Shown: piece by piece, positions 545 to 48,070 of the stretch | Layout of the letters: each line of letters opens with the position of its first letter | How positions within the stretch are numbered: position 1 is the first letter of the stretch | Source: Rhodosorus marinus CCMP1338 | Taxonomy: Eukaryota; Plantae; Rhodophyta | Assembly (NCBI GenBank): GCA_029953675.1 | Contig: JAMWBK010000005.1 | Location: 124,001 to 188,000 of the forward strand | DNA length: 64,000 nt | Direction of reading: 5' to 3' | Position numbers and translations under genes: made by a program | Notes under the pieces: generated by a model | The model's database searches: none | Told to the model about the DNA's origin: nothing | What the model saw: only the letters and a program-made list of their open reading frames with translations

Positions 545-689
545 CCAGACTAACCCCAGACTAACGTCAGACTAACGTAACTGTAAGCTTTATTGGGCAG
601 CCGCCTAACCGTGGTCCCAGACTAACGTAACCGTAAAATTTACTGGGCAGCTGCCTACTGCAGCGTATCAAACCCCAGATTAACGTAAC
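545..689. repeat. Three telomere-like CCCCAGACTAACGTAA units (545-581, 616-631, 671-689) separating 30-40 bp retroelement 3' tips
   Basis: Direct reading; the intervening pieces match the conserved 3' end GCAGCTGCCCAGTAAAGCTTACGG of families A/D. Confidence 0.85.
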
Positions 690-1526
690 GGTAAGCTTTA
701 CTGGGCAGCTGCCTACTGCAGCGCAACACTACGTCTAATCCTATCTAGGGAAAAACTTACTGGAACCCCGCTACCGGGGTCTCATGCTACGTTCAAAAGA
801 AAAAACAGGCACCAGCGGATTCTCCAACTGGTCCACGCGCAAAGCGCCTAGTGCTATCTCTGCGTTACCTCGCCATAGTTGCCGGTTTATCTGGGATCTC
901 ACGTCTCTCAGCTCCTCACTCCTGTGCAGTAGGTGTTTGCAGCTGTCGCGGAGGAACTCTTGTGCTATTTGCCCCGTACGCCCAAACGTCTCTATCGCTA
1001 TCGGGATGAACTTGTCATCCGGTTTCTCGATCACCATCGCTTCCTTGTAGTGAGCGATTTTCCACTTCTCCGCAGCTCTCGCCGCGTATCCGCTATCATC
1101 TTGGCTCCGCCGCAAATATTTTCCCTGTAATGGTGACACCACAGTCACATCCAGCGCATACCTTTGTTTGGTCCTCGGATGCCTAGCAACGATATCAGGT
1201 CGCAGTCCGTAGTTCTCGAAGTACCCCTCAGGTTCTTGCTCTACTTCCATGAACTTCCATCGCCTCAGCCACCGTGCCAGCTCTCTGCAGATTTCGTCGT
1301 GCCTACGTTGCCACAGTCCAGTTGATGTTGGGCAGTGATGAAACCGTTGTACCCCAGTCCTTCCGTGTTTACTCCGGCAACTAGTGCACTTCTCGGTGGT
1401 CCGCAATCCCGGAATTGGCAGCCCCAGCAGTTGTCGACGTTTACCTGCATCTCAACCGCACTCAATTTTTTCGGTGTCAGCGTTGGTATTTCACGCAGCC
1501 AGACTCCCGACCCGGATCCCGCGGCG
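690..1526 (-). mobile_element. 5'-truncated family-A element (CCHC + RLE domain + 3' UTR)
   Basis: ORF 771-1406: CTSC...HHC, RHDE, RPDI, LDVTVVSP, K..HY, FIPIAIETFG, i.e. zinc knuckle plus PD-(D/E)xK nuclease. Confidence 0.9.
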
Positions 1527-1539
1527 GGGGAGTAAAAGA

Positions 1540-1730
1540 GGTGCTCCGCAACAGAAAGCAGTGCAAGATCTGAGCAAAGCGCGGTAAACGGGCGTGGCAA
1601 GCCACTAAACAAACATAAACCCCTCCAGAAAAATATTTGTAACAAAAGCATCTAAAATTTAGATGCATCAAGTTGCTACACTTGATAGAACAGATACTAC
1701 ACTTGATCTTAGCCAAAAGGCCGAGAAGAT
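1540..1730 (-). ncRNA. U2: Full-length U2 snRNA sequence, probably a retrocopy
   Basis: Starts ATCTTCTCGGCCTTTTGGCTAAGATCAAGTGTAGTATCTGTTCT (canonical U2 5' end and branch-point pairing region). Stem IIa ATCAAG/CTTGAT, stem IIb GCATCTAA/TTAGATGC, IIc pairing TGTAGCAA/TTGTTACA, Sm-like ATTTTTCTGG, stem IV with TTGCAC loop; 191 nt. Confidence 0.95.
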
Positions 1731-1873
1731 CCCCAGACTAACGTAACCGTAAACTTTACTGGGCAGCTGCCTACTGCAGCGTATCACTAGTGCTACTACT
1801 ATCTAGGGAAAAGCTTACGCTAACCCCGCTACCGGGGTCTCATGCTACATAAGAAAAAACTGGGACCAGTGGA
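1731..1873 (-). mobile_element. Telomere-like unit (1731-1747) plus ~125 bp family-A 3' tip
   Basis: CCCCAGACTAACGTAAC followed by the antisense 3' UTR (gcagctgcctactgcagc, ctaccggggtctcatg). Confidence 0.85.
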
Positions 1874-2600
1874 CCCTAGACTACTTTCTACGCTGCCTCG
1901 CCTACCCCTTTGGAAGAACACTTGCACGGGAAGCGGACGCCCGGACGCGTTATCACCTCGATACGCTATTTGGAGGCCTCACTACTACGGCCATCGAGGA
2001 CCCTGACTACGAAAACTCTACACTAGCCCAGATCGCACTCCCATGTCGATGGGGAGGACTGGGATTCGCTACTAGACATCGGATCCAGCCCATCGCCTTC
2101 TACTCGGCCCGGTGCGAAACTTTCGAAGGTAATATATAAATAACGGGGAATGGCCATATCTCACAGAGGTACAAGAGCAATCATCTTCAGAGGTACCTGC
2201 AGACACACACACACTGAGGAGAATCCAAAGGTCGACAGCACAGCTTCCTGACCAAATCCGCGCGTCTGCAGCAGCAACAACGCAGACTGCGCCCAGAGGC
2301 CCCCGAGCGAATCAAGACCTTGGCCACCCTGAAGCAGAGAACCGAAACCGCCGCAGGAGCAGAAGAAGCCCGACCATGGAAACATGGTTCCATTCAACAA
2401 ACCCTCTCCAGAGAGGCACACTATGCAGCTTTCCAAAGACTAGTATCGAGCAAATCTTGGCTGAAGATCGGGCCAGAATTCGGTCCGCAGTCGGAGCTGG
2501 ATCAGGAGTGTGGTTACGGGAAATGCCGACGCTCGCCCCAAACTGAGTACAGTAGAACTGCAAGTGAATGTACGACAGCTGTTGGGTTTGCCGATACCGG

Positions 2601-2912: not shown

Positions 2913-2923
2913 GAAAGAGAGAG

Positions 2924-6292: not shown

Positions 6293-6333
6293 CTGGATCG
6301 AGACGCCTTTTCTTGCAGCAGTGGCGGCGTCGG

Positions 6334-7277: not shown

Positions 7278-7289
7278 GCGATGAGACCA
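7278..7289 (-). promoter_or_regulatory. Primer-binding site TGGTCTCATCGC
   Basis: TGG starts 1 nt after the 5' LTR; the complement ends ...GATGAGACCA like a tRNA 3' end. Confidence 0.7.
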
Positions 7290-7290
7290 A

Positions 7291-7590: not shown

Positions 7591-8340
7591 AGCGGCAATA
7601 CGGACGTCCGGGAAGTGTACTAGTTGTGGTAGTACTCATGGTACTAACGGCGTAAAAAGGTTTCACCACTGCCCAACATCGACGGGACTATGGCAGCGAA
7701 GGCACGACGAAATCTGTACGAAGCTGGCGCGATGGCTGAATGCTGGAATTTCATCGACATTAAGCAAGAACCGGAGGGGTACTTCGAGAACTACCGACTA
7801 AGACCGGATATAATTGCAACTCATCCCAGGACGTTCCAAAGGTATGCGCTGGATGTGACGGTTACATCGCCGTGCAGGAGAAAAACGTGAATCGGAGTGG
7901 GTCAGAGAACGGATATGCAGCGAAAAGAGCGGAGAGGTGGAAAATGGCGCATTACAAAGAGGCTATGTCAGTGGAGAAGCCAGATGACAAGCTCATTCCC
8001 ATTGCGATCGAGAGCTTTAGGCGTACAGGACAAATGGCGCAAGAATTTCTACGAGATAGATGCAAGTATTTGTTGCACCGGAGCCTAGAACTGAGCCTAG
8101 AACTGAGGGATGTTCGGGCTCAGATCAACCGCAAATTATGGCAGGGGAACGCGGAGATAGCGATAGGCGCTCTCCGAGTGAACCAGTTGGCGAATGCACT
8201 GGTCCCTGTTTTTCCTTTCGAACGTAGCATGAGACCCCGGTAGCGGGGTTGGCGTAAGCTCTTCCCTAGATAGTAGTAGCACTAGTGATACGCTGCAGTA
8301 GGCAGCTGCCCGGTAAAGTTTACGGTTACGTTAGTCCGGG

Positions 8341-9394: not shown

Positions 9395-9404
9395 AATAAC
9401 CCCG

Positions 9405-12301: not shown

Positions 12302-12760
12302 TAGCAGCAAATTACTGCCGTTCGAAAAACCGACGAGCAACACAACCCCTGAAACGAGACCTGGCATGCGGCCGATTGGAGTCCCCGAAGTACTCAGAAA
12401 GGTGGCGACACAGTGGATCCCACTCGATCACACGTCGGTAACCGATCGAAGACGCGCAAACGAAGACTTCAACTTTTCATCAGGGACATCCACTCTGTAG
12501 ACCTCTGCAATACAGCAAGGGAGATTTCAAAATCTCAACCCTCCAGACTGCCAGTTTCTACCTTTCCTCTCAAGTGATTACTTTTGTTTTGTCAAAGACT
12601 AGAAATACACACATTCTCCCAACGCAGTCCGTGACAATCTGTAACCAATCGAAGGATCCACTGTGTCGCCACCTTTCTGAGTACAATCGGCCCTATGCCA
12701 GGTCTCGTTTCAGGGGTTGCGTTGCTCGTGGGTTTTTCGAACGGCAGTAATCTGCTGCTA
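12302..12760. repeat. Inverted repeat of an RT-internal fragment (12302-12420 / 12654-12760) around a 233-bp unrelated spacer
   Basis: Both arms encode SSxLLPFEKP...KVATQW and both end in GGATCC. Confidence 0.8.
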
Positions 12761-14264
12761 AGGTAACCGTAAAATTTACTTTGCAGCTGCCTATGCAGCG
12801 TAACACTACGTCTAATCCTATCTAGGGGAATACTTACTCGAACCCCGCTACCGGGGTCTCATGCTACGTTCTAAAGAAAAAACAGGCACCAGTGGATTCT
12901 CCAACTGGCCTACGCGCAAAGCGCCTAGCGCTATCTCGGCATTACCTCGCCAAAGTTGCCGGTTTATCTGCGATCTTATCTCGCTCAGTTCTAGGCTCCG
13001 GTGCAACAAATGCTTGCAGCTGTCCCACAGAAACTCCTGTGCCATCGGTCCAGTCCGCCCTATCGTTCGAAATGTTTCTATTGCAATTGGGATGAACTTG
13101 TCATCCGGGTGTTCTATCGTCATCGCCTCCTTGTAGTGCGCTTTCTTCCACCTCTCTGCACAGATTGCTGCATATCCACTCTCCTCCTGACTACGCCTCA
13201 GATACTTCCCTTGCAAAGGAGACACAACCGTCACGTCCAGCGCACACCGTTGAAATGTCCTCGGATGCGTAGCAATGATGTCTGGCCGTAGCCCGTAGTT
13301 TTCAAAGTACTTCTCTGGCTCCTGTTCGATGTCCACAAAGTTCCACCTGTTCAGCCACCTTGCGATCTCTGTGCATATCTCGTCATGCCTACGTTGCCAC
13401 AGGCCAGTCGACGTGGGGCAATGATGAAAGCGTTGTACTCCGTTTGCACCGTGTTTACCACGGCATCGAGTACACTTTTCCGTAGCCCGCAGCCCCGGAA
13501 TCGGTAGCCCCAGTAGTTGTCGGATAATCACCTGCATTTCGATCGAGCTCAGCTTTTTCGGCTCCAACGTCGGCAGTTCTCGCAACCAGACTCCCGATCC
13601 AGAGCCGGCCGCCGGACCTGATTCGAGCACGATGTTCGGCGGAGATGCGCGGATTGTTAACCAGGCGTTGGAATGCGGAATGGTGTGCCTCCCGAGAGAG
13701 AGTTTGTTGTGTAGAACCATTATTCCAATCGCCTGTGTCTTCTGGAGCGTCTCCTGGGGGGTTTTCCCTCGTCTGCTGCAGGGTGACCAGTCTTTTAATC
13801 CGCAGCGGAGTTTCGGGGCGCAGCCTCGCTCGAGCAGATGATTGTATCTGGTCTGCGAGGTGTTCTGTGGACCATTGTAGTCGTGTCTCGGTGTTCGTAG
13901 CCGGAGTTATGTCTGGATAAACACGCCTCTGCAGCTCAGCGATGTAAGGCCAGTCGCCTGTATTGCTTCGAAAGGTATTTGTCCAAGCCGAGTAGTAAGC
14001 GATAGGCTGGATACGCCGTCGAGTAGCGAACCCCAACTCCCCCACCGGCAAGGCAGCGCAATCTGTTCCCAGATGTGTCCCAGGTACTCCTCGTCCTCCA
14101 TGCCACAGGTAGCAAGGCCTCCGAGCAAGTTTTCCAGATTACATCTCGTCATGGTATCCGCCTCCCTTGCCAGACTGCGGCCGAACGGGTAGGCTAGGCA
14201 TCGTAGCAGATAATCTGGACTTTACTAGCATAGCCTGAAGCGCTACGCAAGGCGTGAAGATGAA

Positions 14265-17200
14265 CTAATAACTAGGGAGGGAAGTATGCAACCCCAGGCG
14301 CCGATGGCGCGCCTCGGAAAGCATGTCGCTGGAATATCGCCAAAGGGAGACACTTAAACGCCTCAAGAGCGCCAAATATTCACAGTAGGATGCTCGGCAA
14401 AACATTTCCCGCAACCACTCTAAACCCGACTTTATCTCACGCACCGACCAAAGCTTTCCACACAATGAATGGCTGGAACCACGGTGAGAGCGACCCTCAG
14501 CGCAAAGGCAGACTGGCCATGCTCTCAGCATACCGTCGTTCCTTAACTCTTCGAAGGGCTGAAGCCGCGGCCCCGGCGGCGGGCGGCTGCGGTGAGGTGG
14601 GCGCTGGCCACGGGGCAGGTAATCGCAAGGTCCACATATGTTGAGCGTCTGGCAGCAGCGTCGGAGACGAGGAGATCGGCTATACAACGGGGCGGTGCAG
14701 AGTCCGGAGAGTTGATCTGGGCAGTTCCGACTTCAGCACCCCTCAACCAGTTATGCCCTATCCGGAGTCAAAAATTGCCGCTGAGGGATGTACTTGAGGC
14801 GAGTGTGACGCCTCGTACGGAGAAATTCCTCGCAAGCCAGTCCGCAGGAACCCAGGAAGTGGCTAGCCACAAGCGTCAATCCGGCTCTCAGCATCCCTGA
14901 CAGAAAGACGGCCGGATTAGAGTGCCACGGAGCCCGTGTGGCAACCGAGATAGATCCGTGCGGCAGAACCGGAACTGGTGTGCCATCGAGACGATGACTC
15001 CAATGACGACGGTAGAGTGGTAAACCACAGAGGAGTGCGGAGAGGTATCGGCCTCCCCATGCCGCGGAGACGAGGCGGCAGTGGTAGGCGGCGTGGAGGA
15101 AGGAGGAATTTCCTCCGAGACATGACTGTGTGAGCCGGCACTGTATGTTGGCCCCAGGTGAGGGCTATGTTGAATCACAATCAGTGCGGGAGCTCCACAA
15201 TCGGCTCAAACCCGGGTAGTCTGCAACAGGGGACCCGGGGCTAGCTCTCTCCGTCATCGGCAAGAACTCGGTCGAGGGGACAATCCTCAATCGCTTCAGC
15301 TCGTCCCCATAACAGCTCCCCTCCAGGAACGAAAGCGTGGACCCGGATTTTTGCGTCCGGCACGGCGTTGCACCTCCTGAACGCGTGTTGAAGACCATCA
15401 TAAATTGGCTGGTCAAAAAGCGGGGGCGGCAGGGGGTCACTGGATCCTTCGCGTTGGTCAAAGCCTCGAGCCAAGAGGCAGGCACTTCTTCGCATCTGGA
15501 AGGTCACCAACGTTCGCAGCGTCGGTAGCCCCAGGAGGCAAACTCGCCGCTGGCGAAGCATACCAGCCCACTGGTCTCCTCGCGACGCCGAATCCCCCTC
15601 TTGCAATCGCAACGGTAGAGCGATCTTTGCACGGATAAAGTCCCTGTCGGGAGCAGCTTCGAAGATCGAGGGGCTCATCCAAGAGCGTTCCCCAGTGTTG
15701 CAGGGTCATTTCGTCGGCTTTAGCCGCGATCCACGAGCCCCAAGCTGGAGGCAGGCTGCGCAACCAGTAGTTGAGTCTGGGAGCGGCACAAAAGCGGGAA
15801 AGCAAGCAGGCCGATTGCAGCATGCTGTCGGGTAGGTGCTCAATGGCGTCGGTGAGTTGCTTGTGCCGTGCCAAAACTCGCTCGCAGGATGCTTGGACAA
15901 AGTTGTCAGTCCCCAATCCGACGCCGTGGTGTTCGAACCCTTCACGTTCGCTGATTAGTCGCAGAGTGGGTGGCAGAGAGTTCAGCGACACGTCCCTCGG
16001 GGGTAGAAAGCGACATTTTTCTGTTTCCACAGTCAAACCGACGCGACGTGCAATCGCTTCGATCGCGGTCAGTCCCCTAGCCAGGGTGTCAGGGGTGCCC
16101 AGCAATGTTACGTCATCGTGGTACGCGCAGATTCGAAGATCCGAGACCTCAGTCGAAAGACGTAAAAGTACGAGCCGTAGGGCACAGGCATGAAGAAGAG
16201 GTCCGCAAGGGTCGCCTTGTTGGACGCCAGTATGTGCTTGAAAAACAGTGCCCTCCGGTGTCAAGTAGGGGAGGCTCTCCCCTCCGTAAATACCCGATAG
16301 AAACGGCCACGCCTCCGGAAACACACGTCGGAGCACCTCTAGCGCATGCGTCCGCGACACGCTGTTGAATGCGTTCCGGAAATCAACCACCAAGACTCCC
16401 CACTCCGGCCTACTGGCGCGTTCTAGCTCGATCCCATGGGTGATCAGTTCACAACCCCCAGAGAATCCCACCCCTACTTGCAAGGGCGCCATAAAAGCTG
16501 TGACGCGCTGGCGAAGGCGCTGGCATAGCCACCTCCCGGCTAACTTCCGTAGGCTCTCCACCATCCCGATCGGCCGGAGACGCGGGTGGGCCGGCTGGTG
16601 GTCAGGTTTCGTGAGCAAGCAAAGCTGTGCCTGCCGGAGATGTTCCCATGGCGCAGACGCACCCGATACGCCCTGGAACAACTTGTTAAGGATCCTCAGA
16701 AGCGCGCTCTGGCCAGGCTGGCTCAGGGCCTGCAATAGCTCTGTTCTTAGTCCGGAGGGTCCGGGACAGCGTCCCCGACGCGAGGTACGAAGCAAATCCT
16801 CCAGGTCAGACTCACTGAGCGTCAGATCGATGCGAAACCTGGCCAACTCCGGACGGTCCAAGAATACCTCGAATTCAGGGGACAAATCCACGTCGGACTC
16901 AGGGAACAAAGACGACACCGTCTGGGCGAGACTATCATCGTAGGGGAGGACAGGCGCCTGGCCCTCCAAAACCCGCGCCGCTCGACTTAAATCGCCCACT
17001 GCTACCAATTTCTGTACTCGAGCCGGCACGGGCGACACTGTGCCATGCCGAGTCCGACGGGCGGATGGTGCTGACGACGCCAAATAGCTGCGCTGTAGTA
17101 CTTCGAAGTCTCCCTTCAAGAACAGGGCCAGTCGGTCTCGTACTCGCCATCTGCGCTCCAATGTGTGAATGGGGGCCAGAATCAGGCGCGGCATGACCCC

Positions 17201-17437
17201 CAGAAAAACCCAAATGACTGTGTCCCGAATGTTGCGAGCCAGGCTCGTGAAGATGAAATCGAGAATGGTTCCAGCTACTAGAAGGTCTCCACGAGGAAGG
17301 ACGACTGGGGGAATGCCCCCACGGAGGGGAAGCGAGCCTCCTTCCAAAGAAATCCACCGCCGGAGCCAACTCCGAAAACGCGTACGCCAAATGCCCCAGT
17401 CTCCGCCCTCCTTCAGGACATAAGACTGTAGATCCAT
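14265..17437 (-). pseudogene. Family-C ORF2 (RT + CCHC + RLE), frameshifted in the 3' half
   Basis: RLRPIG, VDFRNAFN, GVQQGDPCGP, AYHDD in ORF 15458-17437; 3' pieces match the contiguous ORF 46336-47307. Confidence 0.9.
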
Positions 17438-17468
17438 AGGCTGCGACCTCGCAGCCGTGCCTGGAGCG

Positions 17469-18668
17469 CTAATCGTGCTTCTCCCCCTTAGACCCGGGGG
17501 AGTCGGTACTCGCTCTCTTACCTCCTATCCGCACCAAAGTCGTGAGCCGCCCACTCCGCGAGGCTCGCGGAACGGATCCCGCGGGCTTCAGCAAAGTAAC
17601 CTGGGCGTCCTCCACCGCCATGCCCTCAGTCTGCTCCCCTTCCTCACCACTCTCGCTGGAAGTAGTGCTGGAAGCAGAGCCCTCCAAAATACCCACCCGC
17701 TGCAGCTCTGTCTTGTAGCGCGAAGTCAGCACAAGTCGCCTCTCCAGATCGAAGAAACTGGAAACCGCCATGCGCAGGTGACGAGGGCCCGACCGGAACC
17801 GCTCCAACAAGATCCTCTCAAGGCGCTGAATCCGTAGCCAATGGATCGCTGCCGCCTTCACGCTGCTCTCATGCTCAGAGAGCCCTGCCGTTTCTCCTGG
17901 AGACAGGAAATTGCCCGAGAAACGGTCAAAATCGAAGTGCAAAACCACCTGCGGGTTGCAGCGCAGCCACCGGGCGCTCTCAGGCCACTGCTCGGTAGGC
18001 TTCGCCAGCAAGGCCTCCAGGTACTTGGCGGCGGTTGCGGAGACCAAAAACAGCACATCGCGGCCCTCATAGTTTGCGAAGAAGAAATCACCCCGGCTGC
18101 ACCCTAACGATTCCGCAAAAGTGTCCCGGAAGTCTCGCATAGACGGAACCTGTCCTCGTGTAGTCTGGGGCCGGACATTTCGCACCCACAGAAATTGGAG
18201 AGTGGTCTCCACAGGTCCATCCTGATGCTCGCGAGATGGTATGAAACGGAGCATAGCCGCCGTACGTGTGGCAGTGGTGCCCTTCCGCAAGACTGATGCG
18301 TACGAAGCACCCCCCTTGCGGCCACCACGTGCCCCCGAAGTAGCCGGGAGCTGGTGACCACCTGAGGGCTGGTCCAAGAGAGGGAAGTCCACAGCTGCAG
18401 TCTCCTCCACACCGGTTGCCGCACAGTCACCACCACCATTGCCTCGAGTCCCCGAGCGCTGAAGCGCGTTTTGGCCCGGCCTGCCGCTCCCCAACGTCGT
18501 ACTGTCCCGCGCAGAAGCAACAGCCCTCGCCTGTCCCGGGACAGGTTCATGTTGATTGACCGGATGTTGACTGCCTTCAGCCAATCCTGCCACTCTGGGG
18601 CAATTCAAATTCTCGTCCGAATTTGAATTTGACCTGGCCAGCAATCCCGATTCCAGCCCACCTCCCAC
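17469..18668 (-). CDS. Family-C ORF1 (399 aa, putative RNA-binding)
   Basis: Open frame ending 31 nt before the ORF2 ATG; shares FPxL, SYA, AAxLR and RNVRP motifs with ORF1 of families A and F. Confidence 0.75.
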   Translation of the reverse strand: MGGGLESGLLARSNSNSDENLNCPRVAGLAEGSQHPVNQHEPVPGQARAVASARDSTTLGSGRPGQNALQRSGTRGNGGGDCAATGVEETAAVDFPLLDQPSGGHQLPATSGARGGRKGGASYASVLRKGTTATRTAAMLRFIPSREHQDGPVETTLQFLWVRNVRPQTTRGQVPSMRDFRDTFAESLGCSRGDFFFANYEGRDVLFLVSATAAKYLEALLAKPTEQWPESARWLRCNPQVVLHFDFDRFSGNFLSPGETAGLSEHESSVKAAAIHWLRIQRLERILLERFRSGPRHLRMAVSSFFDLERRLVLTSRYKTELQRVGILEGSASSTTSSESGEEGEQTEGMAVEDAQVTLLKPAGSVPRASRSGRLTTLVRIGGKRASTDSPGSKGEKHD

Positions 18669-19936
18669 CTAGCTTCTTGGTGAGCTGAGGGAGCACTCCA
18701 CGATCACTCGCAGCCGTGATCAGGCTGGAGACAGCGGAGATAAGTGCACGCGCCTGGGTGCCAGAAGCGCCTTCCAAGTCAACCTCGGAAGAAAACGTGC
18801 CGCAGCTGAGGCGAACACGGAGTCCCCACCTGGCAGTGCCTCCTTGGGAGGAGGCTCCGTCGAGCGCGGAGATATCCCTACCATCCTGAGGGAATCCGCA
18901 AAGGAAACGTTGCACCACCAATATGAAACCGCACCGAGAGAATAATCGACCAAACCCAACCCAAATAGGAAAGGCCCCGCAACACACCCACCCGGAAGAC
19001 AGAAGTGGTTGCAAATACAAACGACGCCCCGCGGAAAATCGAGGGGAAGGCGTACCAGAGGAAGCGCTTCCCGTAAACGAACACGCTCGCGACCGAAAAA
19101 GAAACATAATCTAGCCGCGTTTCAGCTCAGTACCTGAACAATGCGACCTGTGCGTTAAGTTCATGTTGCGGTAGCTGGGCGATTTCCTTGATGACCTTTT
19201 CGTGCTTATTTTGAAGCGCACGGCACTCGTGCTCGATATATTCCCGGTTTCCTATCGGGATCGAATGGATAGTGACGCCTTCTCGGGTAACTTGTATGTC
19301 AGGTATCTCGCGATTGATGACTCGCGCCGTCGTCAAAGGCTCGGCCGTATAGCGTGCATTTGTTGAGTTGTAGGCGGGCCCCAAGAGATGGGAGCATGGT
19401 TCGGCTCCAGGCTAGTGCTTGCTTCAGTTCCTGCAGGGGTCCCACGATCGTAATATGGTCATGGATAGCGACAATCGTTAGATCAGAGAACTTTGTTCGC
19501 AGAGCTTTTAGGAACGGTGCGAGTGCTAGTGCATGTAGCACCGGCCCAAGAGGGTCTCCCTGTTGTACTCCCGTAGCTGCTTGGAGCGTCAGTCGTGAGT
19601 GTTCCGTTTGGTTCTCTCCAGGTGCAGAGCGCCAGCCGCAAAGCGTCGGCGAGTCCGCTGCGTCGCTTCCGTACCCAAGTCTGTAGACCACCGCAAGCTC
19701 CGGAAAGTGCTGGTCCACGAGTTTCTTGGCGAGGCGTTGATCAATCCTGTTGAATGCATTCTCGAGGTCAAGCCTAAGCACCACCGCGTCTGGTTCACAT
19801 GACAGATGGGCCTGGATCGCGTGAAGTGAGCGTTCGCATCCGCCACTGACTCCGATTCCTAGTTGTAATGGCACCAGGAGCGTGCGCACCCTGTCGATCA
19901 CCGCGCGAAGGGTCCATTGAGTCGCCACTTTTCGCA

Positions 19937-22556
19937 AAGAAGAAATGGCCAAGTGGTTGTCACAAGCGAACGACGACGATTGGAGCGTCCTTCATATTTG
20001 TGCCTATCACCAGGAGAAGGGAGAGACGTTGATAAAGTTGCTGGAGTATGGGGGAAAGTATTTACCCCAAGAAGAAATGGCCAAGTGGTTGGCACACGTC
20101 AACAACGACGATTGGAGCGTCCTTCAAGTTGAATGAATGGTTTAATCGGAGGCTGAAAAAAAAAACCCCGAGGGGAAAAAAAGACTAAGCGCGGCGAAGT
20201 ACTCGCGCCTCCAACATCAAAGCGGCATTCATGCGCCACAGCAGGAAACTTAAGCGGGTAAACAACGATTGAAGACGGTCAGGGCGTTCGCGGAACAACT
20301 CCCGAAGCCAGCGAGAACCAACAGAGTCCATGAACCCAAAGCACTCAATGATCAGGGGTACCAAGCGATGTGCTAGTGCCGAAGCACGAACACCAGGGGA
20401 AGACAAAGCCCCCGCGTATTTGATCTCTTTGCGGCGTCTCATGCTGGCGGCGGCAGATCCACGGCGCTCCCCCGCAGCCGGGAGATAACGACTAGCTTGT
20501 GGGTTAGGAACAGCAAGATCAACGTATGTGGTACGGCGGCTGTCGTCACAGGTGATCACCAGGTCGGCTACACGGCGTTCATCATTTTGAAAGTCCGCGA
20601 CGGGTAAAGGTTTCTCACGTTCGATTTCCAGACCGGCTTGCCGGACTATAGGCCGAAGTTCCCGGTATAACAGGTTCAAGATCCGTGTGTGGCGGCGGGT
20701 TCGAGCACCTTTCACCGCCGGCCAACTAGCGAGCAGGTGGGCGCCAAAATCTGCGTTGTCTTCAGTCTGAGAGCAGAGAGGGCACGACGAACCCATCTCG
20801 TACGGCCAAGGGGGCTGATGTAAGCCGAGGTATAAGCGCAGTGAAGTACGCACTTCGAAATCCGACAGTGTGAGTGGCGGAAAGGCTGGTACGGTCATGA
20901 GCCACTGAGAGCTAAGAACCCCTCCAAGACTACGTAGGCGGGCGCGAGCGCGAGAAGATGAGACCATCTGCGCGAGGAGTCGGCCATATGCAGCACGGTG
21001 CAAGTCCCAAGAAAGGAGATTTTGCAGCGCATCCGTGCGTGCTTGAGCTCGGCTCCCAGCGCGCTGGGAATCATCAGGAGGATCAACTGGAACTTCTTCT
21101 TCTGCGGCAACCACTGGGTCAATCTCCCCTAGAACAGGTTCAGGCGCAGGACGAATCCCCGGGGCGGAGCCTCGAGAGCGGTCAAATACAGCTCGCCAGT
21201 CAGGAAGACGGGGTTGAACGGTTTCGGGGAGACTAGTACAGGAATTCAGGGCGGTTTGGAGCTCCAGAAACAAGTCTTGGGCGCTTTCCGGTACGCTGGG
21301 AAGCAAGACACCCCGCGAGAGGCTCGCCATCAAATTGCGGAACTTCGAGATACCCAAGCTGCTCAAAGTGGGAAGTGCGGTTCCCCAGGCCCCTACTGCG
21401 GCTGCGGGTTGGACCACAACACGATTGCAGAGGCCCAGTCCCCCCAATCGCAATGGGAGGCCTACCTGGGCGCGCACAACATCACAGGTGGGTCGCGGCA
21501 GAGCGCTCAGCTCTTCATCGAGAAAATACCCCAGGTCACGGAAACTTTCAGCATCCGCACGAGTGGCCAACCACCGGCCCCAATGAGTTGGAAGTGAGCG
21601 AAGCCAATAGGTTAACCGCTGACTGCAACAATACCGAAACAGCAACAACGAGCACTGGAGAAAGCCCGGAGGTAGCCGTCGAAGCTCTGCAACCAGCTGT
21701 CTGTGCTTACCGAGGAGCTGCAGCAACTCGCCTTCAACGAAGGACGGCGACCCGTAGGGGATGCCTAAGTGGACAAAACCATCCGGTCTCCAAATATCCT
21801 GGAACGACGCAGGTACCTGCTGCTCTTGTGCAGCTACACCTCCCCAGTAGAACGATTTGTGATGATTAACCTCCAGGTCAACCCGCGAAGCCAAGGAGCG
21901 GAGACGATCATAAGCGAGTGCTAGAGTATCAGGGGCGTGCGCGATATCAGGAGAAGGGAGAGACGTTGATAAAGTTGCTGGAGTATGGGGGAAAGTATTT
22001 AGGCCAAGAAGAAATGGCCAAGTGGTTGTCACACGTCAACAACGACGGTTGGAGCGTCCTTCATTTTTGTGCGCGATACCCGGAGAAGGGAGAGACGTTG
22101 ATAAAGTTGCTGGAGTATGGGGAAAGTATTTACGCAAAGAAGAAATGGCCAAGTGGTTGTCACACGTCGACAACGACGATTGGAGCGTCCTTCATATTTG
22201 TGCCTATTACCAGGAGAAGGGAGAGACGTTGATAAAGTTGCTGGAGTATGGGGGAAAGTATTTACCCCAAGAAGAGATGGCCAAGTGGTTGTCGCACGTC
22301 AACAACGCCAGTGACAGCGTCCTTTCTTTGTGCGCAGAACGTCAGAGGGAGGGAGACACTGATCAAGTTGGCGGAGCATGGGAGAAAGTATATGTTGAAA
22401 GAAGATATGGGCAAGTGGTTGGGAACAGTGGCGGACAGGGACACTAGACTTAAGCTCGAAAATCGGCTAGGAGCCACCTCCGTTGGAGCCGGCGGTGGCT
22501 CGAACACACTCCCATATGGACGCCGGCCTAAAGAAGGCTGTTGCGTGTTGATGTGA
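19937..22556 (+). pseudogene. Ankyrin-like 44-aa (132-bp) tandem repeat gene ending in a CaaX box, disrupted
   Basis: Unit AKWLSHVNNDDWSVLHICAYYQEKGETLIKLLEYGGKYLPQEEM, about 5 copies; split by family-B copy 2; frameshifts near 22120 and 22350; ends KEGCCVLM*. Confidence 0.7.
20130..21908 (-). mobile_element. Family-B RLE element copy 2, 5'-truncated, frame intact
   Basis: Near-identical to 9449-11226; covered by ORF 20185-22032; tail CCATTCATTCA. Confidence 0.9.
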
Positions 22557-24760: not shown

Positions 24761-25073
24761 TGCACACTTGAAGCAGTCGTCGTGATCATGACGCCTTCCA
24801 GCAGAGCGTTCTTCCTTCACAGAAGACGTATATCTGCTTTCAATCGTCTGCTGAACATTGACGCCAACTCTTCAGTGACATGCCCTCCCACGAGCCTCGA
24901 GCCTCTCGGCAAGGGCCACTCATCCGCAGTTTTAGATGATCGACTGAACCGATCGATCGATTGTTGCAGGAGGAGCCATCACTACTACAGGGAGAACTGA
25001 GAGCCGCTAAGTGAGGCAAAAATCTCGAGGCACAATGAAGAAAGCTTCTTGCACGAGCATAGCAAGCAGGTGA

Positions 25074-25093
25074 CCCCAGACTAACGTAACCCC
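25074..25093. repeat. Telomere-like unit CCCCAGACTAACGTAACCCC
   Basis: Exact 16-mer plus 4 bases. Confidence 0.85.
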
Positions 25094-30050: not shown

Positions 30051-33000
30051 CACGTCTCTCAGCTCCTCACTCCTGTGCAGTAGGTGTTTGCAGCTGTCGC
30101 GGAGGAACTCTTGTGCCATTTGCCCCGTACGCCCAAACTTCTCTATCGCTATCGGGATGAACTTATCATCCGGTTTCTCGATCACCATCGCTTCTTTGTA
30201 GTGAGCGATTTTCCACTTCTCCGCAGCTCTCGCCGCGTATCCGCTATCATCTTGGCTCCGCCGCAAATATTTTCCCTGTAATGGTGACACCACCGTCACA
30301 TCCAGCGCATACCTTTGTTTGGTCCTCGGATGCCTAGCAACGATATCAGGTCGCAGTCCGTAGTTCTCGAAGTACCCCTCAGGTTCTTGCTCTACGTCCA
30401 TGAAGTTCCATCGCCTTAGCCACCGTGTCAGCTCTCTGCAGATTTCGTCATGCCGACGTTGCCACAGTCCAGTTGATGTTGGGCAGTGATGAAACCGTTG
30501 TACCCCAGTCCTTCCGTGTTTACTCCGGCAACTAGTGCACTTCTCGGTGGTCCGCAATCCCGGAATTGGCAGACCCAGCAGTTGTCGAACGTTTACCTGC
30601 ATCTCAACCGCACTCAATTTTTCGGTGTCAGCGTTGGTATTTCACGTAGCCAGACTCCCGACCCGGATCCCGCGGCAGACCGTATTCGAGCTCGGTTTTC
30701 AGGGGAGATTCGTGGGTTGGTGACCAGCGTTTGGAATGCACAATGGTGTGCCTCTCGAGAGAGGGTTTGTTGTATTGAACCATTATTCCAAGCTGCAGTC
30801 TCGCCCGGGGCGCTTCGAAGAGATGTTTCTCGCGGTTGTTGCAGGGTAGTCAGTGCCAAGATCCGCGGCGGGGTTTCTGGTCCGAGCCTCCGTTGTATTG
30901 CTCGCGACGATGCACAGATCTGGTCCGCCAGCTGTGCAGTCGACCATCGTTGATCCATCGGCTCGTATGTGTCTGGTGAGCGTTCTGCCGTAACCTCCCG
31001 CTCTAGTTCAGTCAGGTATGGCCATTCATCTTCATTGTTCCGGAAGGTGTTTCTCCATGACGAGTAAAACGCGATGGGTTGGACGCGCTTTCGAGTAGCG
31101 AAACCCAAACCTCCCCAGCGGCAGGGCAGAGCGATTTGGTCCGAGATCAGCTCTGCGTAGTCCTCGTCCTCTACAGCTGTCGTAGCGAGGCCGCCGAATA
31201 GAATTTCCAGGTGATATCTGGTCATCACGTCGGCCTCGCGTGCCAGATTTCTTCCAAACTCGTATGCGAGGCATCGTAGCACATAGTCTAGTCGCGTTTC
31301 TGCACAGAACCTGAAGAGGACAATTTGCGTGGTAAGCTCCGGTTGTGGGAGCTTGGCAATTTCATCAAAGAGTTTCTCATGCTTATTTTGCAACCCCCGG
31401 CACTCCTGTTCGATATGTTCTCGGCTGCCTATCGGTATCGAGTGGATGGTGACTCCGTCTCTGGTCACTTGCACTCCAGGAATCTCATGGTTGACCACTC
31501 GCGTGGTAGTCAGTGTTCGCCCGTACACAGTGCACTTGCCGAGTTGCAGGCGTGCTCCAACAGAGGGGAGCACAGTTTTTGCCCATGCCAGGGACGCCTT
31601 CACGGCTTGTAGCGACCCGACAATCGTGATATCGTCGTGGATAGCAACAATCGTTTCGTTGGGGAACTTGGCTCGCAACGCTCTTAGAAAGGGCGCCAGG
31701 GATAGTGCATGTAGCACCGGCCCCAGTGGATCTCCCTGTTGGACTCCTGTAGTTGCTTGGAGAGTCAGGCGAGAGGTGTCGGTTTCGTTCTGTCCCGGGG
31801 AAGATCGCCAGCCACAGAGCGTCGGTGAGTCCGCGTTGTCGCTTCCATAGCCAAGTCTATATACTGGTGCAAGCTCCGGCAAGTGTTTGTCCACCAGTTG
31901 CTTGGCAAGGCGTCGGTCGATGCGATTAAAGGCATTCTCTAAGTCTAGCCGAAGGACCACCGGCCGAAGGACCACCGAATCGGGTTCGCATGACAAATGG
32001 GCCTGGATCGCGTGAAGTGAGCGTTCGCACCCGCCACTTACTCCAATACCCAGTTGTAAGGGCACCAGGAGCTCACGCACCCTGTCCATAACCGCGTGAA
32101 GAGTCTATTGCGTTGCTACCTTGCGCAAAACTTCTGGTACTCCGATAGGGCGAACTCCGGGATGCTCCTGCGGCACTGAACCCTTGTTAGGCTTCGCGAA
32201 CGGCAGGAGTCGACTACTGCGAAGGGCGCGGGTCAGAGCCGGGGAAAATTTCTCAGGAGCGGTCGCCAGTTGTCGCAATACACGAATCAACGCCACTTGC
32301 GTCGGTTGAGTTGCACCTTGGAGGTGTTCCGCTCGGAGACCGCTAGGACCTGGGCTCTTGCCCTGAGGAAGACGTGCCGCGATCGACATGAGGCCCTCGT
32401 CGGCAGCTTTTCTTGAATCCCACCGCCGCTTTAGTGTTTCGGTATTCAGAGCGAGCAAAGATTGCAGGGCGTGTGCAATCTCGTCTGGTGAGTCACCTTC
32501 CGCCGGGTTGGGAAAGAGCGCTTGTAGTTGTCTCCACGTAGCCGCGGTAAAAGGTGCCATTTCGGTGGCCTGTAGGCTCCGAGCTGCATCTGAAAGGCGG
32601 CCAAGGTGTGCTAGTTTCAGCGCTCGCTTGTGGCGCCCGAGATGTTTGCGTCGAACCGCTTCAGCTCCTTGCGGTGCGGTAGTATGCGACAGCATAGACG
32701 CCTTGTCCTCTAGAGCGCTCCAGACCGTAGAGAATTCTCCTTCAAGCACATGCGATACCTGCATGCCAACATCAAGTGCAGAGTGTCCAAGGACCAGGCC
32801 TGGAAGTCCGACAAGAAGCAGGCTGGCGTTTGTTGGTGCGGTGCTGTCCATAGAGAGCTCTAATGCAGCACGGAAGAGGCAGCTCCATGTTTGAACCTGG
32901 GCGCGTGGCACAAATCGCCGTGTGGGAACCGGGCTGTGTATAAGGCGCGTCCACTGCCTGCCTCCTTCCGTGACGTCGTCGACGAAGACGCTCCACCGCC

Positions 33001-34470: not shown

Positions 34471-36151
34471 GCCCTCACGGAGAAAGTCTTGGGTCATCTG
34501 CCCTGTTCTGCCGAAGGTTTCTATCGCAATAGGAATCAGTTTGTCATCTGGATGCTCTGTCGCCATCGCCTCCTTGTAGTGTGCAAGTTTCCAACGCTCC
34601 GCCTGTTTTGCTGCATAACCATTGTTGTCTTTGCTGTTGGCTAGGTGTCTCGCCTGTAGGGGTGACACCACCGTCACATCGATCGCAAATCGTTGCCAGG
34701 TTCGACGGTGTATAACTACCAAGTCAGGTCGTAGATTCGAGTTCGTGAAGTAGTCTGTAGGTTCTTGCTGAACATCTCTGAGCTGCCATCTGTTAAGCCA
34801 GCGCGCCAGCTCAGTGCAGAGCTCATCATGTCGCCGTTGCCAGAGCCCAGTCGAGGTCTGACAATGATGGAATCTTTGTACACCGTTCGTACGGTGTGTA
34901 CTATTGCACGTAGTACACCTCTCCGTCGTCCGCAGTCCCGGAATCGGGAGGCCCAGCAATTGTCGGATATTCAGGTGCATGCCTCTCCCACTCAATTTTC
35001 GGGGTCCGAATTGTGGCAAATCTCTTAGCCAGACGCCTGAACCTGCTCCTGCAGCGGAACGGATTCGGGCACGATGTTCCGGGTCGAGTAAGGGATCCGT
35101 GACCAGTCGGGTGAAAGCAGTAAGGTGTGCCTCTCTTGAGAGGGTCTGTGGTAAGGAACCTTGCTTCACCGCAGACTGGTCAGGGGGGGAATTTGCTGCA
35201 GGGGCAGCAGTCAGGTACGTGGGGTTGAGGAGCTGTCTTATTCGGGGGCTGGTTTCCGGTCTCAGTCTCCCCCTAATGGCTGTAGTTGCCACTAGGATTT
35301 GGGAGGGGAGGTCGTCAGTAGAGCGGTGTAGTGTCATCGGGGGGTTGAGCAGCTGTGGTGTAGCTTCCTGGGTGCGTTCTAACAATTTTTGTAGGTGGGG
35401 CCAATAGCCCTTGTTAGCTGCAAAGGTTTGCATCCAACCTGTGTAGAAAGAAATAGGTTGGATGCGCCTTCTAGTGCAGAAGCCCAGTCCCCCCCATCGG
35501 CAGGGGAGTGCTACCTGCTTCCAAACCGGGTGCGTTCTATCAGGGTCGTCCGCATGGGCTGTTTGTAGACAGCCTAGTAGCCTTTCCAACTGTAGTCGTG
35601 TGTTGTAGTCCGCTTCTCGTGCTAAACTTCTGCCGTAGTGGTAAGCCACTGTCCTTAGGGTGTAGTCAAGTCTCGTTTCCGAGCAGTATCGGAACAGCGC
35701 CAGTTGTGTGTTGAGCTCTTCAGGAGGCAGATGGGCGATCTCTTTGCCCAGTGTTTCATGCTTGTTTTGTAGTGTTCTCAAAGCTTCTTCCACATATTTT
35801 CTCGTCCCAATGGGAATGGAGTGTATGGTTACTCCTTCGCGAGAAACATTGAGGTCCGGCATGTATCTGGTAACCAGTCGAGGGGATGCTATGTGGTAGC
35901 CGAATAGGGTGCACTTTTGAGGCTGTAGTTCCGCCCCAATGGTAGGGAGGGCATTTTGACTCCACAGTAGGGCATCTTTCAGGGACTCCAGGGGGCCCAC
36001 GAGCGTGATATCGTCATGGATGGCGACAGTAGTCAGCTCAGGGTATTTCTGCCGCAGTGCTTCGAGAAAAGGCGCCAGTGAGAGGGCGTGTAAGGCAGGT
36101 CCCAAAGGATCTCCTTGTTGTACTCCCGTCTGCGCTTGTAGGTGTAGGCGA
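34471..36151 (-). mobile_element. Family-D element fragment (RT C-terminal half + RLE), frame intact
   Basis: ORF 34261-36105 with GVQQGDPLG, AIHDD, HHCQTSTGLWQRRHDE, RPDL, IDVTVVSP; 5' junction abuts the telomere-like repeat. Confidence 0.9.
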
Positions 36152-36190
36152 TAACCCCAGACTAACGTAACCCCAGACTAACGTAACCCC
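36152..36190. repeat. 2.4 perfect tandem copies of CCCCAGACTAACGTAA
   Basis: taaccccagactaacgtaaccccagactaacgtaacccc defines the 16-bp period. Confidence 0.9.
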
Positions 36191-47300: not shown

Positions 47301-47360
47301 TTATTAGTTCATCTTCACGCCTTGCGTAGCGCTTCAGGCTATGCTAGTATGCTAGTAAAG
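44305..47360. mobile_element. Stack of family-C fragments (plus 45147-47360; minus 44305-44460) and a diverged B-like fragment (minus ~44700-45145)
   Basis: ORF 46336-47307 is an intact C-terminal CCHC/RLE; its 3' ~530 bp are the near-identical reverse complement of 14222-14760. Confidence 0.8.
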
Positions 47361-47379
47361 TCCAGTAAAGTCCAGTCCA

Positions 47380-48070
47380 GTATAGTCCAGTCTCAGAGCA
47401 GAACGGAATAGAGCTGGTTGGGTGTTCAGTTCTTGAGAGGGGAGATGTGCAATCTCCTCCAAGAGCTTGGCGTGGGTATTTTGGAGCCGACGCAGGGCTT
47501 CTTCCACGTAGTGCCGAGTACCAATCGGGATAGAGTGGATGGTCACGCCTTCTACGGAAACTTGCACAGCTGCGGTATCTCGTGCGACCAGGCGCGCGGA
47601 CTCGAGATGATACCCGAAGAGTGAGCGGTTGTAGCTGGGCTCCGAGGGTCGGTAGAGTAGTCTGGCTCCAGAGTAGTGCTGCTTTCAGGGTCTGCAGGGG
47701 TCCAACCAGCCTGATATCATCATGTATCGCGACTATGGTCAGGTGGGGGAATTGGCTCCGGAGCGCTTCCAGAAATGGTGCCAGGGATAGGGCATGTAGG
47801 GCAGGTCCTAGAGGGTCCCCTTGCTGTACCCCGGTGGTCGCCTGCAGGTGTAGGCGGTCTTTGCTCAGGTGGCCTTCCTTGGCTTTGGGACGCCAGCCCA
47901 AGAGCGTAGCGGACCCTCCGGGGTTGCCTCTTGGTATTCTGAATGCAGGAGAGTCTGTTCCTATACGAAGCTGCGAGTGTGGAATCTGTTTGCACACCGT
48001 TTTCATGGTAGTGCCGTGTCGATTCTTACCTGCTCCTACAGCTGTGGTTTGCTCCTACAGTTGAGGCGGA
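47380..48070 (-). mobile_element. Family-D-like RT fragment
   Basis: LQATTGVQQGDPLGPALHALSL, AIHDD; ends at the ETRLDY-equivalent codons where family C joins. Confidence 0.8.

Follow-up and report, generated by a model that had tools for sequence, protein, structure and literature searches.

The sequence analysed here belongs to contig JAMWBK010000005.1 of Rhodosorus marinus (GCA_029953675.1). The window, meaning the whole stretch of 64,000 nucleotides, starts about 124 kb into the contig and contains nested R2-like non-LTR retrotransposons, which encode a restriction-like endonuclease (RLE). All counts are drawn from the window plus four further loci in the R. marinus genome; L004 is a subtelomere of contig 7 and L130 a locus on contig 13. 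Positions in ORF2 refer to a concatenated reference of 1045 aa, in which RLDY corresponds to residues 589-592. The site under study is formed by the Leu-Asp-Tyr (LDY) codons, sense 5'-CTRGAYTAY-3', at ORF2 residues 590-592 of the D/A/E family. Two copies of another family, C, meet it:

14217..19105, minus strand: family C, full length, with ORF1 at 17469-18668, RT ORF at 15458-17437, an RLE region with a frameshift, and the 3' tail ...GCTAGTAAAGTCCAG
46359..47380, plus strand: second copy of family C, truncated at its 5' end; its 3' tail (47349-47380) is stuttered

Element families and the encoded endonuclease

The RT of family C matches Pfam RVT_1 with E=5.5e-15, and that of family D reaches 29.4 bits against a cut-off of 29.6. 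The best solved-structure matches of the C RT are R2 proteins (1.4e-10), followed by the LINE-1 ORF2p (~1e-7). A C-terminal profile built from seven domains of families A, D, E, C and B matched the RLE region of the R2 structures 9nl2 (E=4.9e-9), 9nl3, 9dou and 8gh6. In the alignment the CxxC, RRH, E, PD and DV motifs line up with the R2 proteins, and the residues conserved in the elements are CxxC...RRH(D/T)...E...D...K. Many copies are 5'-truncated with common 3' ends and without LTRs, and a tail-only insertion (43603-43652) is flanked by a 14-bp direct repeat. The absence of LTRs, the 5' truncation and the target duplication are together the signature of target-primed reverse transcription. 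The elements do not have the single ORF of the classical R2: a separate upstream ORF1 is found in C (399 aa) and D (352 aa), which argues against a strict R2 but not against the R2 superfamily. By their predicted RT, their Cys/His motif with RLE and the marks of target-primed reverse transcription, the elements classify as RLE-type non-LTR retrotransposons of that superfamily.

The members of the superfamily (R2, R4, NeSL, CRE/SLACS, Utopia) share with these elements the order RT, Cys/His motif and PD-(D/E)xK endonuclease, the defined non-poly(A) 3' ends, the 5'-truncated copies with short target duplications, the template jumping and the preference for repeated targets. The R. marinus elements differ in the separate ORF1, in a D-family tail that is one 16-nt telomere-like unit and in the presence of C at the studied site in both orientations; they are not tied to a particular clade.

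Junctions at the Leu-Asp-Tyr codons

A preliminary description had placed three junctions on the same codons of the A/D ORF2: a full-length C inserted with a 7-bp target-site duplication, a second, stuttered C 3' end in the orientation opposite to its host, and a copy beginning exactly at the site at 1876. All three are present as described. The breaks (i), (ii) and (iii) map to ORF2 residues 590-592, inside 11 nt. The hosts, i.e., the interrupted elements, are only 53-72% identical over the flanking 300 nt, and the junctions are therefore three separate events. The features involved are the following:

14210..14216, no strand: target-site duplication, 3' copy (plus strand ATAATCT, host sense AGATTAT)
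19106..19112, no strand: target-site duplication, 5' copy
12758..14216, minus strand: host (i), 3' part, A-subfamily, from the LDY codons to the 3' tail (ORF2 aa 591-1045)
19106..19938, minus strand: host (i), 5' part, truncated at 19938 (ORF2 aa 317-601), ~100% identical to L004 10724-11555
47380..48006, minus strand: host (ii), E-like, ending at the LDY codons (ORF2 aa 397-592), sense CTGGACTATAC at 47390-47380
1876..2599, plus strand: host (iii), first part, starting with CTAGACTAC (ORF2 aa 590), interrupted at 2600 by an LTR retrotransposon
7595..8340, plus strand: host (iii), second part, up to the 3' tail GTTACGTTAGTCCGGG
1731..1873, minus strand: inverted 143-nt fragment of 3'UTR and tail, host (iii) subfamily, 92% identical to 8197-8340

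At junction (i), the host sense strand reads ...GAAACGCGGCTAGATTAT|GTTTCTTTTTCGG on the 5' side and ...GCTAGTAAAGTCCAG|ATTATCTGCTACGATGCC on the 3' side. The duplication of ATAATCT (14210-16 and 19106-12) measures 7 bp if C ends in ...GTCC and 5 bp if it ends in ...GTCCAG. Once joined, the flanks are gapless and colinear with an intact D copy, and the microhomology amounts to only 2 nt. The first bases of C seen at this junction, GTTTCTTTTTCGG, also occur in L004 at 19789, after a different flank. At junction (ii), the C tail (47349-47392) reads GCTAGTAAAGTCCAG TAAAGTCCAG TCCAG TATAGTCCAG and continues into the antisense strand of the host, whose sense end is ...GAGACTGGACTATAC. The host site is the reverse complement of the C tail in 10/11 bases; this host sequence is genuine, since a related intact copy in L129 reads TTGGACTATAC there. 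At junction (iii), the plus-strand copy is preceded by the inverted 143-nt fragment, whose 5' end adjoins the LDY site. Only one side of each event is visible at junctions (ii) and (iii).

A fourth host comes from L130, a locus picked by its RLE-profile match and blind to the RLDY site. The 5' end of its D-family fragment (L130 20970) lies 9 nt upstream of the motif, which reads CTG-GACTATGA-GACTATGA-GAACATATT-CTACG, an exact 8-nt tandem duplication; an intact D copy has CTA-GACTATG-TG-CTACG at the equivalent positions. The duplication spans nearly the same nucleotides as that of junction (i). Among the D-family copies that reach the site in the sampled loci of the genome, 4/7 are disrupted there and 3/7 are intact. 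Intact codons in the window are the following:

31283..31294, minus strand: intact RLDY codons CGA CTA GAC TAT, in a near-full-length D copy (30047-34471)
35662..35673, minus strand: intact RLDY codons AGA CTT GAC TAC, in an E copy (34472-36150)

Repeats of this kind are difficult to assemble, and the composite of junction (i) is found twice (window 19936-14219, matching L004 10724-16334, with the A part ~100% identical). The contig 7 composite is a near-identical duplicate and therefore no new event, and it was left out of the count. That the junctions are assembly artefacts or one ancestral event copied around is extremely improbable: the four hosts belong to different subfamilies, the junction structures differ, and stutters, duplications and filler bases are what biological processes leave behind.

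The composite adjoining junction (iii) also contains a copy of the U2 snRNA:

1536..1732, minus strand: complete U2 snRNA copy between two element fragments (RF00004, 140.7 bits, model positions 1-192)
545..1525, minus strand: 5'-truncated D-type copy with a triplicated stuttered tail (ORF2 aa 795-1045), immediately 3' of U2

Bibillo and Eickbush reportedly described template jumping by the R2 reverse transcriptase in 2002, and Buzdin et al. are said to have described U6-L1 chimeric retrocopies in the same year. The arrangement found here is similar, with element RNA, full-length snRNA and element tail joined end to end and with stuttered tails; the captured RNA is U2 instead of U6, and the element is RLE-type and algal. 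Utopia and Keno are retrotransposons specific for the U2 snRNA gene, and the sequence that comes after Utopia is U2 starting at nucleotide 39 (PMC4640811). They share with this locus an RLE-type element beside U2 sequence. Utopia-type targeting was rejected: the tail adjoins position 1 of a complete U2 (1-192), not nucleotide 39, and the element fragments on both flanks indicate capture by template jumping.

Chance, RNA-level breakage and telomere mimicry as possible explanations

The clustering in the window, spotted post hoc, is by itself only suggestive. For the window alone, a uniform null would place 3 of 20-30 breakpoints inside 11 nt with a probability of 0.02-0.14, and a smoothed bootstrap gives p = 0.2. 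Breakpoints are non-uniform elsewhere too, with a loose second cluster at ORF2 aa 977-1004. Unrelated junctions may lie close together by chance in a scrambled array, with short homology biasing the end joining. The homology available is the palindromic CTAG core against CCAG/CTGG in the C tail and TCTGG in the D tail, and junction (ii) is complementary to the C tail as noted. The array is also rich in template-switch and fold-back junctions (the U2 capture, 3'UTR fragments in inverted orientation at 8340-9400, and a tail joined to an internal part at 28165). On the other hand, junction (i) has a proper target duplication with hardly any microhomology, both C junctions with D-family DNA (2/2) lie at the site (the probability of two C junctions ≤11 nt apart is ~0.005), and the blindly fetched L130 gave a further host and a duplication scar on the same nucleotides. 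With the L130 host added, the probability of 4 of 25-35 breakpoints inside 20 nt is 0.003-0.04; with its scar as a fifth event it becomes 3e-5 to 2e-3. Coincidence is hence quite unlikely, and the recurrent cutting or invasion of one short stretch of the RT gene points to preferred-site cutting and not to chance.

The preference could also arise in RNA, if RT stalling, an RNA cut or an RNA start at these codons produced cDNAs truncated at the 5' end and switches of template at the site. Indeed, 5' truncation accounts for two of the events (1876 and L130 20970), and the RTs clearly jump templates, as the U2 snRNA copied end to end between element fragments indicates. This origin is very unlikely, however, since it leaves unexplained why junction (i) has a target duplication, why L130 has a tandem one and why host (ii) keeps its 5' part; no conserved RNA structure surrounds the site (consensus energy -3.6 kcal/mol, no covariation).

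The preliminary description had proposed that the RLE nicks a cryptic telomere mimic within sister elements. All intact D/A/E 3' ends finish with ...GTTACGTTAGTCTGGGG, one unit of a 16-nt telomere-like repeat, and the following copy has GGGGTTA ahead of its 5' end at 36150, 27447-27451 and L129 2217. The terminus carries the repeat and repeat units separate the copies, as in telomere-repeat-specific elements. The repeat is also found on its own:

36152..36190, minus strand: telomere-like repeat GGGGTTACGTTAGTCT x 2.4, between unique DNA and a 5'-truncated E copy

L004 has the repeat at a distance of 3.5 kb from the contig 7 end, its G-rich strand facing outward, and the sequence read there extends to 1.9 kb from that end. 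The R. marinus genome paper gives no telomere sequence, and the 16-mer is only a putative telomere repeat of the organism.

TRAS1 and SART1 of Bombyx are APE-type telomere-repeat-specific retrotransposons. MoTeR1/2 of Magnaporthe (PMC7367193), which are RLE-type, and FoTeR of Fusarium (PMC12857005) have the same specificity. These elements resemble those of R. marinus in their one-orientation arrays at or near chromosome ends, in the telomere-like sequence at an element terminus, and in the truncated, repeat-capped copies and relics that are now chromosome-internal. The differences are the red algal host, the 16-nt unit, its place at the element 3' end and a break site that lies inside elements instead of in a telomere target.

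For the mimicry itself, CTAGACTA resembles the CCAGACTAA core of the repeat, and the telomere-targeting machinery, whether the D-family RLE or telomerase that heals an end at a seed, would take the site for a target. Besides the D-family tails, the evidence for mimicry includes L004, where the G-rich strand of every element faces the end of the contig and the repeat caps a truncated C, and the inverted insertions (ii) and (iii), oriented as expected if the host sense strand is the C-rich one. At junction (iii), the antisense TAGTCTAG+GGT agrees with the telomeric TAGTCTGG+GGT in 10/11 bases, and telomeric sequence also makes up the three filler bases; GGGGTTAC stands before the L130 fragment. 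MoTeR truncations in Magnaporthe, capped at in-frame telomere seeds, provide a precedent (PMC7367193). The core match is nevertheless weak, being 7/9 only (7/12 when extended), a quality expected by chance at ~13 sites per element, and in no copy does the RLDY site rank with the best mimics. Better mimics are unbroken: CCCAGACTACCT (10/12) in the A copy of L004, CCCAGACT (8/8) in the homologous PRL codons of C itself in at least three copies, and GTAGTCTGG or TTAGTCCGG inside C. The orientation of junction (i) is wrong for the model, and a simple asymmetric target does not predict C in both orientations. Mimicry is accordingly regarded as unlikely. The part of the proposal that stands is a recurrent site in diverged elements, with marks of a staggered cut (5-7 bp and 8-nt duplications) and with C there twice.

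A probable staggered cut and the possible role of family C

With somewhat better than even chances, the Leu-Asp-Tyr codons are a sequence-determined hot spot of breakage and insertion, most likely because an R2-type RLE encoded by the elements cuts both strands there in a staggered manner. Beside the directly observed break positions, duplications, host independence and R2-like RLE domains, the RLE is probably the cutter, and among the families that of C is the first candidate. The sense strand would be nicked after motif position 9-11 and the antisense strand 5-8 nt to the left of this nick, leaving 5' overhangs. Either 3' end could then prime reverse transcription. Priming from the antisense 3' end would give a co-oriented C with a target duplication, as at junction (i). 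Priming from the sense 3' end would give an inverted C, as at junction (ii), where 10 of the last 11 bases of the C RNA, GUAAAGUCCAG, are complementary to the host end CTGGACTATAC. Joining a broken end to another cDNA would produce junction (iii), and fill-in with re-ligation of the cut would produce the 8-nt tandem duplication of L130. A single mechanism for four structurally differing events is an economical assumption, and the occurrence of C in both orientations, unusual among site-specific RLE elements, speaks against the hot spot.

Family C had also been proposed as a site-specific parasite of the telomeric elements. In the window, L004, L125 and L128, 9-10 other C-like 3' junctions lie off the site and adjoin B or C fragments or unique DNA:

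window: off-site C-like 3' junctions at 23420 and 45866
L004: at 16334, 16990 and 19742
L125: at 11420, 13200, 13760, 20480 and 20600
L128: also represented, no coordinate

Most C-like copies thus lie elsewhere, and the two C copies at the site have opposite orientations instead of the one site and one orientation of a Tx1L-like element. Since C is autonomous (ORF1, RT and RLE), parasitism reduces at most to a preference: C is an autonomous element that may prefer the site, not an obligate parasite. It is doubtful that C is a hyperparasite of a conserved D-family RT coding motif, with a tail GUAAAGUCCAG evolved or templated to pair with the Leu-Asp-Tyr codons, an RLE that cuts this nearly palindromic sequence at nicks staggered by 5-8 nt, insertion that could start from either strand, and a telomere-associated D family inactivated copy by copy.

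The analogue suggested earlier, the non-LTR retrotransposon Tx1L, inserts into the Tx1D DNA transposon of Xenopus, as stated in a passage of PMC1919474 citing Christensen et al. 2000. The likeness holds for a landing site within another mobile element and fails for the two orientations and the many C-like copies elsewhere. Tx1L also has an APE-type endonuclease with a strict single site and orientation, whereas in R. marinus the enzyme is of the RLE type, and a related retrotransposon provides the target in one of its coding motifs.

R2-type enzymes are under development for site-specific gene insertion, so new specificities and the tolerance of both orientations are of practical interest. To our knowledge, no R2-like endonuclease from the R. 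marinus lineage has been studied. The sequences further suggest that this red alga has a 16-nt repeat that is probably telomeric, together with retrotransposon arrays associated with telomeres. Provided that an enzyme makes the hot spot, the site would be a short, testable DNA target of ~12 bp, with predictions for both nick positions, for an R2-like endonuclease. The hot spot would then also represent an RLE-type retrotransposon that naturally disables its relatives at a conserved RT-coding motif, a form of competition among mobile elements.

Retrotransposon families of the window

The window lies at approximately 124001-188000 of the contig record and is therefore internal, not terminal. The contig, JAMWBK010000005.1 (GCA_029953675.1, 3.19 Mb), encodes a host gene of the window:

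48336-49772, minus strand, host gene

The R. marinus assembly is described in PMC10250338, where no telomere sequence is given. Self-comparison, ORFs and a protein map reveal nested fragments of non-LTR retrotransposons on both strands across the left 48 kb. Three groups are distinguishable: the D/A/E family, with several subfamilies that are 53-72% identical, family C and family B. Every intact D/A/E 3' end terminates in ...CAGTAAAGNTTACGGTTACGTTAGTCTGGGG; the ends of families C and B read ...GCGCTTCAGGCTATGCTAGTAAAGTCCAG and ...CCATTCATTCA, respectively. Family C contains Pfam RVT_1, and in a search of solved structures R2 proteins match it best (E=1.4e-10), with LINE-1 behind. When the C-terminal domains of all three groups are combined in a profile, it matches R2 proteins in their restriction-like endonuclease (RLE) region at E=4.9e-9, and the CxxC, RRH, E, PD and DV motifs line up. 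The matches make all three groups RLE-type, R2-superfamily-like elements, which work as members of that superfamily do. Each group has a separate ORF1.

No gene model for the C RT is found among the called genes of the R. marinus genome, and only three gene clusters (P0062/P0072, P0081 and P0082) were usable for reaching C copies by this route. Scanning metagenome contigs for family C 3' ends with the 17-mer GCGCTTCAGGCTATGCT gave 120 matches, all of them by chance and unrelated to C; the pattern is too short for such a collection.

A motif resembling the C 3' end (TAGCGCTYCAGGC; window 17455-17475 and 14231-14246) occurs again between C ORF1 and ORF2, and in a related transcript (L002 1-20) it stands immediately 5' of where the RT begins. 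Two family B copies (9440-11229 and 20120-22421) are 99.2% identical, and one is preceded by a 132-bp tandem repeat of 3.7 copies (21937-22421) that is read into its ORF.

Breaks at the Leu-Asp-Tyr codons

The preliminary description placed three junctions at the same RLDY codons of the A/D ORF2. All three are present and map to residues 590-592 of 1045 in a concatenated ORF2 reference, the LDY codons (motif CTRGAYTAY in the D/A/E family). The broken copies, or hosts, are strongly divergent from one another and hence represent three separate events. All junctions were read from one assembly, (ii) and (iii) from one side each.

Junction (i) holds the full-length family C insertion:

14217-19105, minus strand, family C at junction (i)

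The target duplication claimed for it is borne out, with ATAATCT at both 14210-14216 and 19106-19112; its length is 5 bp if the terminal AG is assigned to C and 7 bp otherwise. The host sense strand reads GCGGCTAGATTAT|GTTTCTTTTTCGG on the 5' side and GTAAAGTCCAG|ATTATCTGCTACGATGCC on the 3' side. When joined, the flanks (...GAAACGCGGCTAGATTATCTGCTACGATGCC) are colinear with an intact D copy (...GAAACGCGACTAGACTATGTGCTACGATGCC). Junction (ii), at 47349-47392, is likewise as described earlier: a second C copy, truncated at its 5' end, has a stuttering tail (TAAAGTCCAG, TAAAGTCCAG, TCCAG, TATAGTCCAG) that passes in the opposite orientation into the antisense strand of its host. This host is E-like, with a sense strand ending ...TTCTGCTCTGAGACTGGACTATAC. 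At junction (iii) a plus-strand copy begins at 1876 with CTAGACTAC, and upstream of it lie CC and an inverted 143-nt 3'UTR fragment of the same subfamily as the host.

Approximately 25 independent D-family breakpoints were counted within the window. Under a uniform null restricted to the window, the probability that three of 20-30 breakpoints fall within 11 nt is 0.02-0.14. A smoothed bootstrap of the window breakpoints that includes the cluster itself gives P = 0.2, and P is ~0.005 for the only two junctions of C with D-family DNA falling within 11 nt of each other. The clustering from the window alone is suggestive, no more. A loose second cluster is formed by short 3' fragments at residues 977-1004.

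Host (iii) also contains, near ORF2 residue 833, a Ty3/gypsy-type LTR retrotransposon (2601-7590) with gag, protease, RT/RNase H/integrase, a chromodomain-like end and 300-bp LTRs that are 99.7% identical. A complete U2 snRNA occupies 1536-1732 on the minus strand (Rfam 140.7 bits, model positions 1-192), with no space for a promoter. Its first base adjoins the tail of the 143-nt element fragment (1731-1873) and its last base a 5'-truncated copy (545-1525). The U2 is best read as a capture in which the RT of the element jumped end to end from one template to the next, a case comparable to the U6-L1 chimeras. Targeting of U2 as in Utopia (PMC4640811) was rejected because the Rhodosorus U2 is complete, lying between element fragments.

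The block at 8340-9400 comprises short 3' fragments of the D family, four to five in number (residues ~977-1045 and UTR), whose orientation alternates and whose junctions are tail-to-tail palindromes, and an inverted B-like fragment (8413-8550). These look like fold-back or template-switch products. At 27899-28200, a D fragment with ORF2 residues 1-88 alone is fused to the last ~35 nt of a D-family 3'UTR and tail (CTGCCCAGTAAAGCTTACGGTTACGTTAG...). The copy is internally deleted, and the ORF listed at 28169 accordingly begins within a tail.

The site at other loci

A contig 7 locus (L004), which stops 1.9 kb short of the contig end, was reached via the gene model NDN08_004844 (KAJ8903744/5). 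It carries the same A|C 5' junction as (i), identity to the window being ~100% in the A part and >99% in the 5' half of C. Because of this identity the junction was taken as a recent duplicate of (i) and not counted as a fourth event. After its C tail comes another C, truncated at the 5' end, rather than the remainder of the host. The site is intact in the second D-like copy of the locus (CGT CTA GAC TTT). The gene model itself (L004 10001-12565) is chimeric, passing from the A-element ORF2 through the RLDY junction into family C, and its shorter isoform terminates ...ALFRY, directly ahead of the break.

Two contig 13 loci, L125 and L130, were found by an RLE-profile search in which the site was not a criterion; L130 therefore serves as a small prospective test. 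They form an internal cluster, chiefly of B- and C-like fragments. The one D-family fragment reaching the site in L130 begins 9 nt 5' of the motif, with GGGGTTAC before it. Its motif reads CTG GACTATGA GACTATGA GAACATATT CTACGATGCC, where the D counterpart is CTA GACTATG TG CTACGATGCC. The insertion is 17 nt long and starts with an exact 8-nt tandem duplication, covering motif positions 4-11 as against 3-9 at junction (i). Of the D-family copies sampled in the R. marinus genome that reach the site, four are disrupted there and three intact, with a probability of 0.003-0.04 for four within 20 nt, or of 3e-5 to 2e-3 when the L130 duplication scar is also counted. Transcripts of related strains (L003, L129 and P0060) have intact sites. 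The homologous RLNY/RLTY codons of families B and C showed no breaks in any of the 4-5 copies seen.

Cutting, telomere-like repeats and the role of family C

What the events would share is a DNA break at the Leu-Asp-Tyr codons that leaves 5' overhangs 5-8 nt long; the predicted nicks fall after position 9-11 of CTRGAYTAY on the sense strand and 5-8 nt to the left on the antisense strand. At (i), C cDNA would have been primed from the antisense 3' end (...GCAGATAAT, or ...AATCT) and the sense strand cut after ...GATTAT. At (ii), priming would have used the sense 3' end ...CTGGACTATAC, which pairs with 10 of the last 11 bases of the C RNA; the stutter has the look expected when synthesis starts repeatedly at the 3' end of an RNA. 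Because TTGGACTATAC is read in a related copy that is intact, this end sequence belongs to the host. At (iii), an inverted composite cDNA would have been linked through its 5' end to the 3' part of the host, and in L130 the overhang was apparently filled in and re-ligated. The cut itself would most naturally be ascribed to a PD-(D/E)xK-type RLE, and suspicion would fall first on that of C, the element found inserted. The site of host (i) contains the palindrome AGAT-T-ATCT, with the two proposed nicks symmetric around its centre, and the other hosts contain TAG-A-CTA. Such palindromes, although common when small, may be the reason that both strands are used. Complementarity of the C tail was rejected as a general explanation: among the three hosts only the E-like one matches the tail strongly, with 1 mismatch in 11, and hosts (i) and (iii) have 4-5. 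No conserved RNA structure was found at the site.

The main rival to this reading, proposed in the preliminary description, is that the site is attacked for its likeness to the telomere-like repeat. The site core agrees with CCAGACTAA at 7/9 bases, a match expected ~13 times per element by chance (own calculation), and it is never among the best when all 12-mers of six D-family copies are ranked against the repeat. Better mimics are left unbroken: the L004 A copy has CCCAGACTACCT, at least three copies of C have CCCAGACT in their own Pro-Arg-Leu codons, and matches at 8 of 9 bases occur within C. A telomere connection is compatible with the orientation of junctions (ii) and (iii), with the antisense TAGTCTAG+GGT at (iii) beside the telomeric TAGTCTGG+GGT, with the GGGGTTAC at the L130 5' end and with the way in which truncated MoTeR elements of Magnaporthe receive their caps, at telomere seeds that are in frame (PMC7367193). 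Mimicry is a weak explanation of the breaks.

The 16-nt repeat GGGGTTACGTTAGTCT is the tail of D-family elements and also forms short arrays bordering element arrays:

window 36152-36190, GGGGTTACGTTAGTCT repeat
window 25068-25087, GGGGTTACGTTAGTCT repeat
window 545-577, GGGGTTACGTTAGTCT repeat
L004 20873-20940, GGGGTTACGTTAGTCT repeat

In L004 it caps a truncated C at a distance of 3.5 kb from the contig end, its G-rich strand facing outwards. Rhodosorus marinus probably has this 16-mer as its telomere repeat, which the genome paper leaves unreported. The D family resembles the telomere-repeat-specific MoTeR and TRAS/SART elements in its tail of one repeat unit and in the GGGGTTA ahead of the next copy at three junctions; the L004 elements are moreover all directed outwards. 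At three independent junctions (window 36150 and 27447-27451; L129 2214-2218) ...TCTGGGGTTA is followed by the 5' end of the next copy, and this recurrence suggests a fixed second-strand cleavage position within the repeat. A tail-only insertion (ATGTTTACGTTAGTCTGGCTCAC, 43603-43652) between exact 14-bp direct repeats GCGGAAGCGCGTAG has the look of a D-family insertion that was aborted at a non-telomeric site and left a long target duplication.

C-like 3' ends adjoin 5'-truncated C copies at window 45866, L004 16334, L125 13760 and 20480, and in L128. At the first three the following C copy is co-oriented, and the truncations lie within 31 residues (C RLE residues 129, 142 and about 160), which may mark a second recurrent junction region, inside family C. 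Other C-like 3' ends adjoin B fragments (L125 11420), unique DNA (L004 16990) or unidentified sequence, and B- and C-like elements accumulate in L125/L130 largely without D-family hosts. The earlier comparison with Tx1L in Tx1D (PMC1919474) holds for the insertion of one element into another, but the single site and single orientation that define that system are absent in family C. Similarly, of the site-specific parasite once proposed, the obligate tie falls away, since C encodes its own ORF1, RT and RLE and has other 3' ends elsewhere; what the data allow is a preference of family C for the site.
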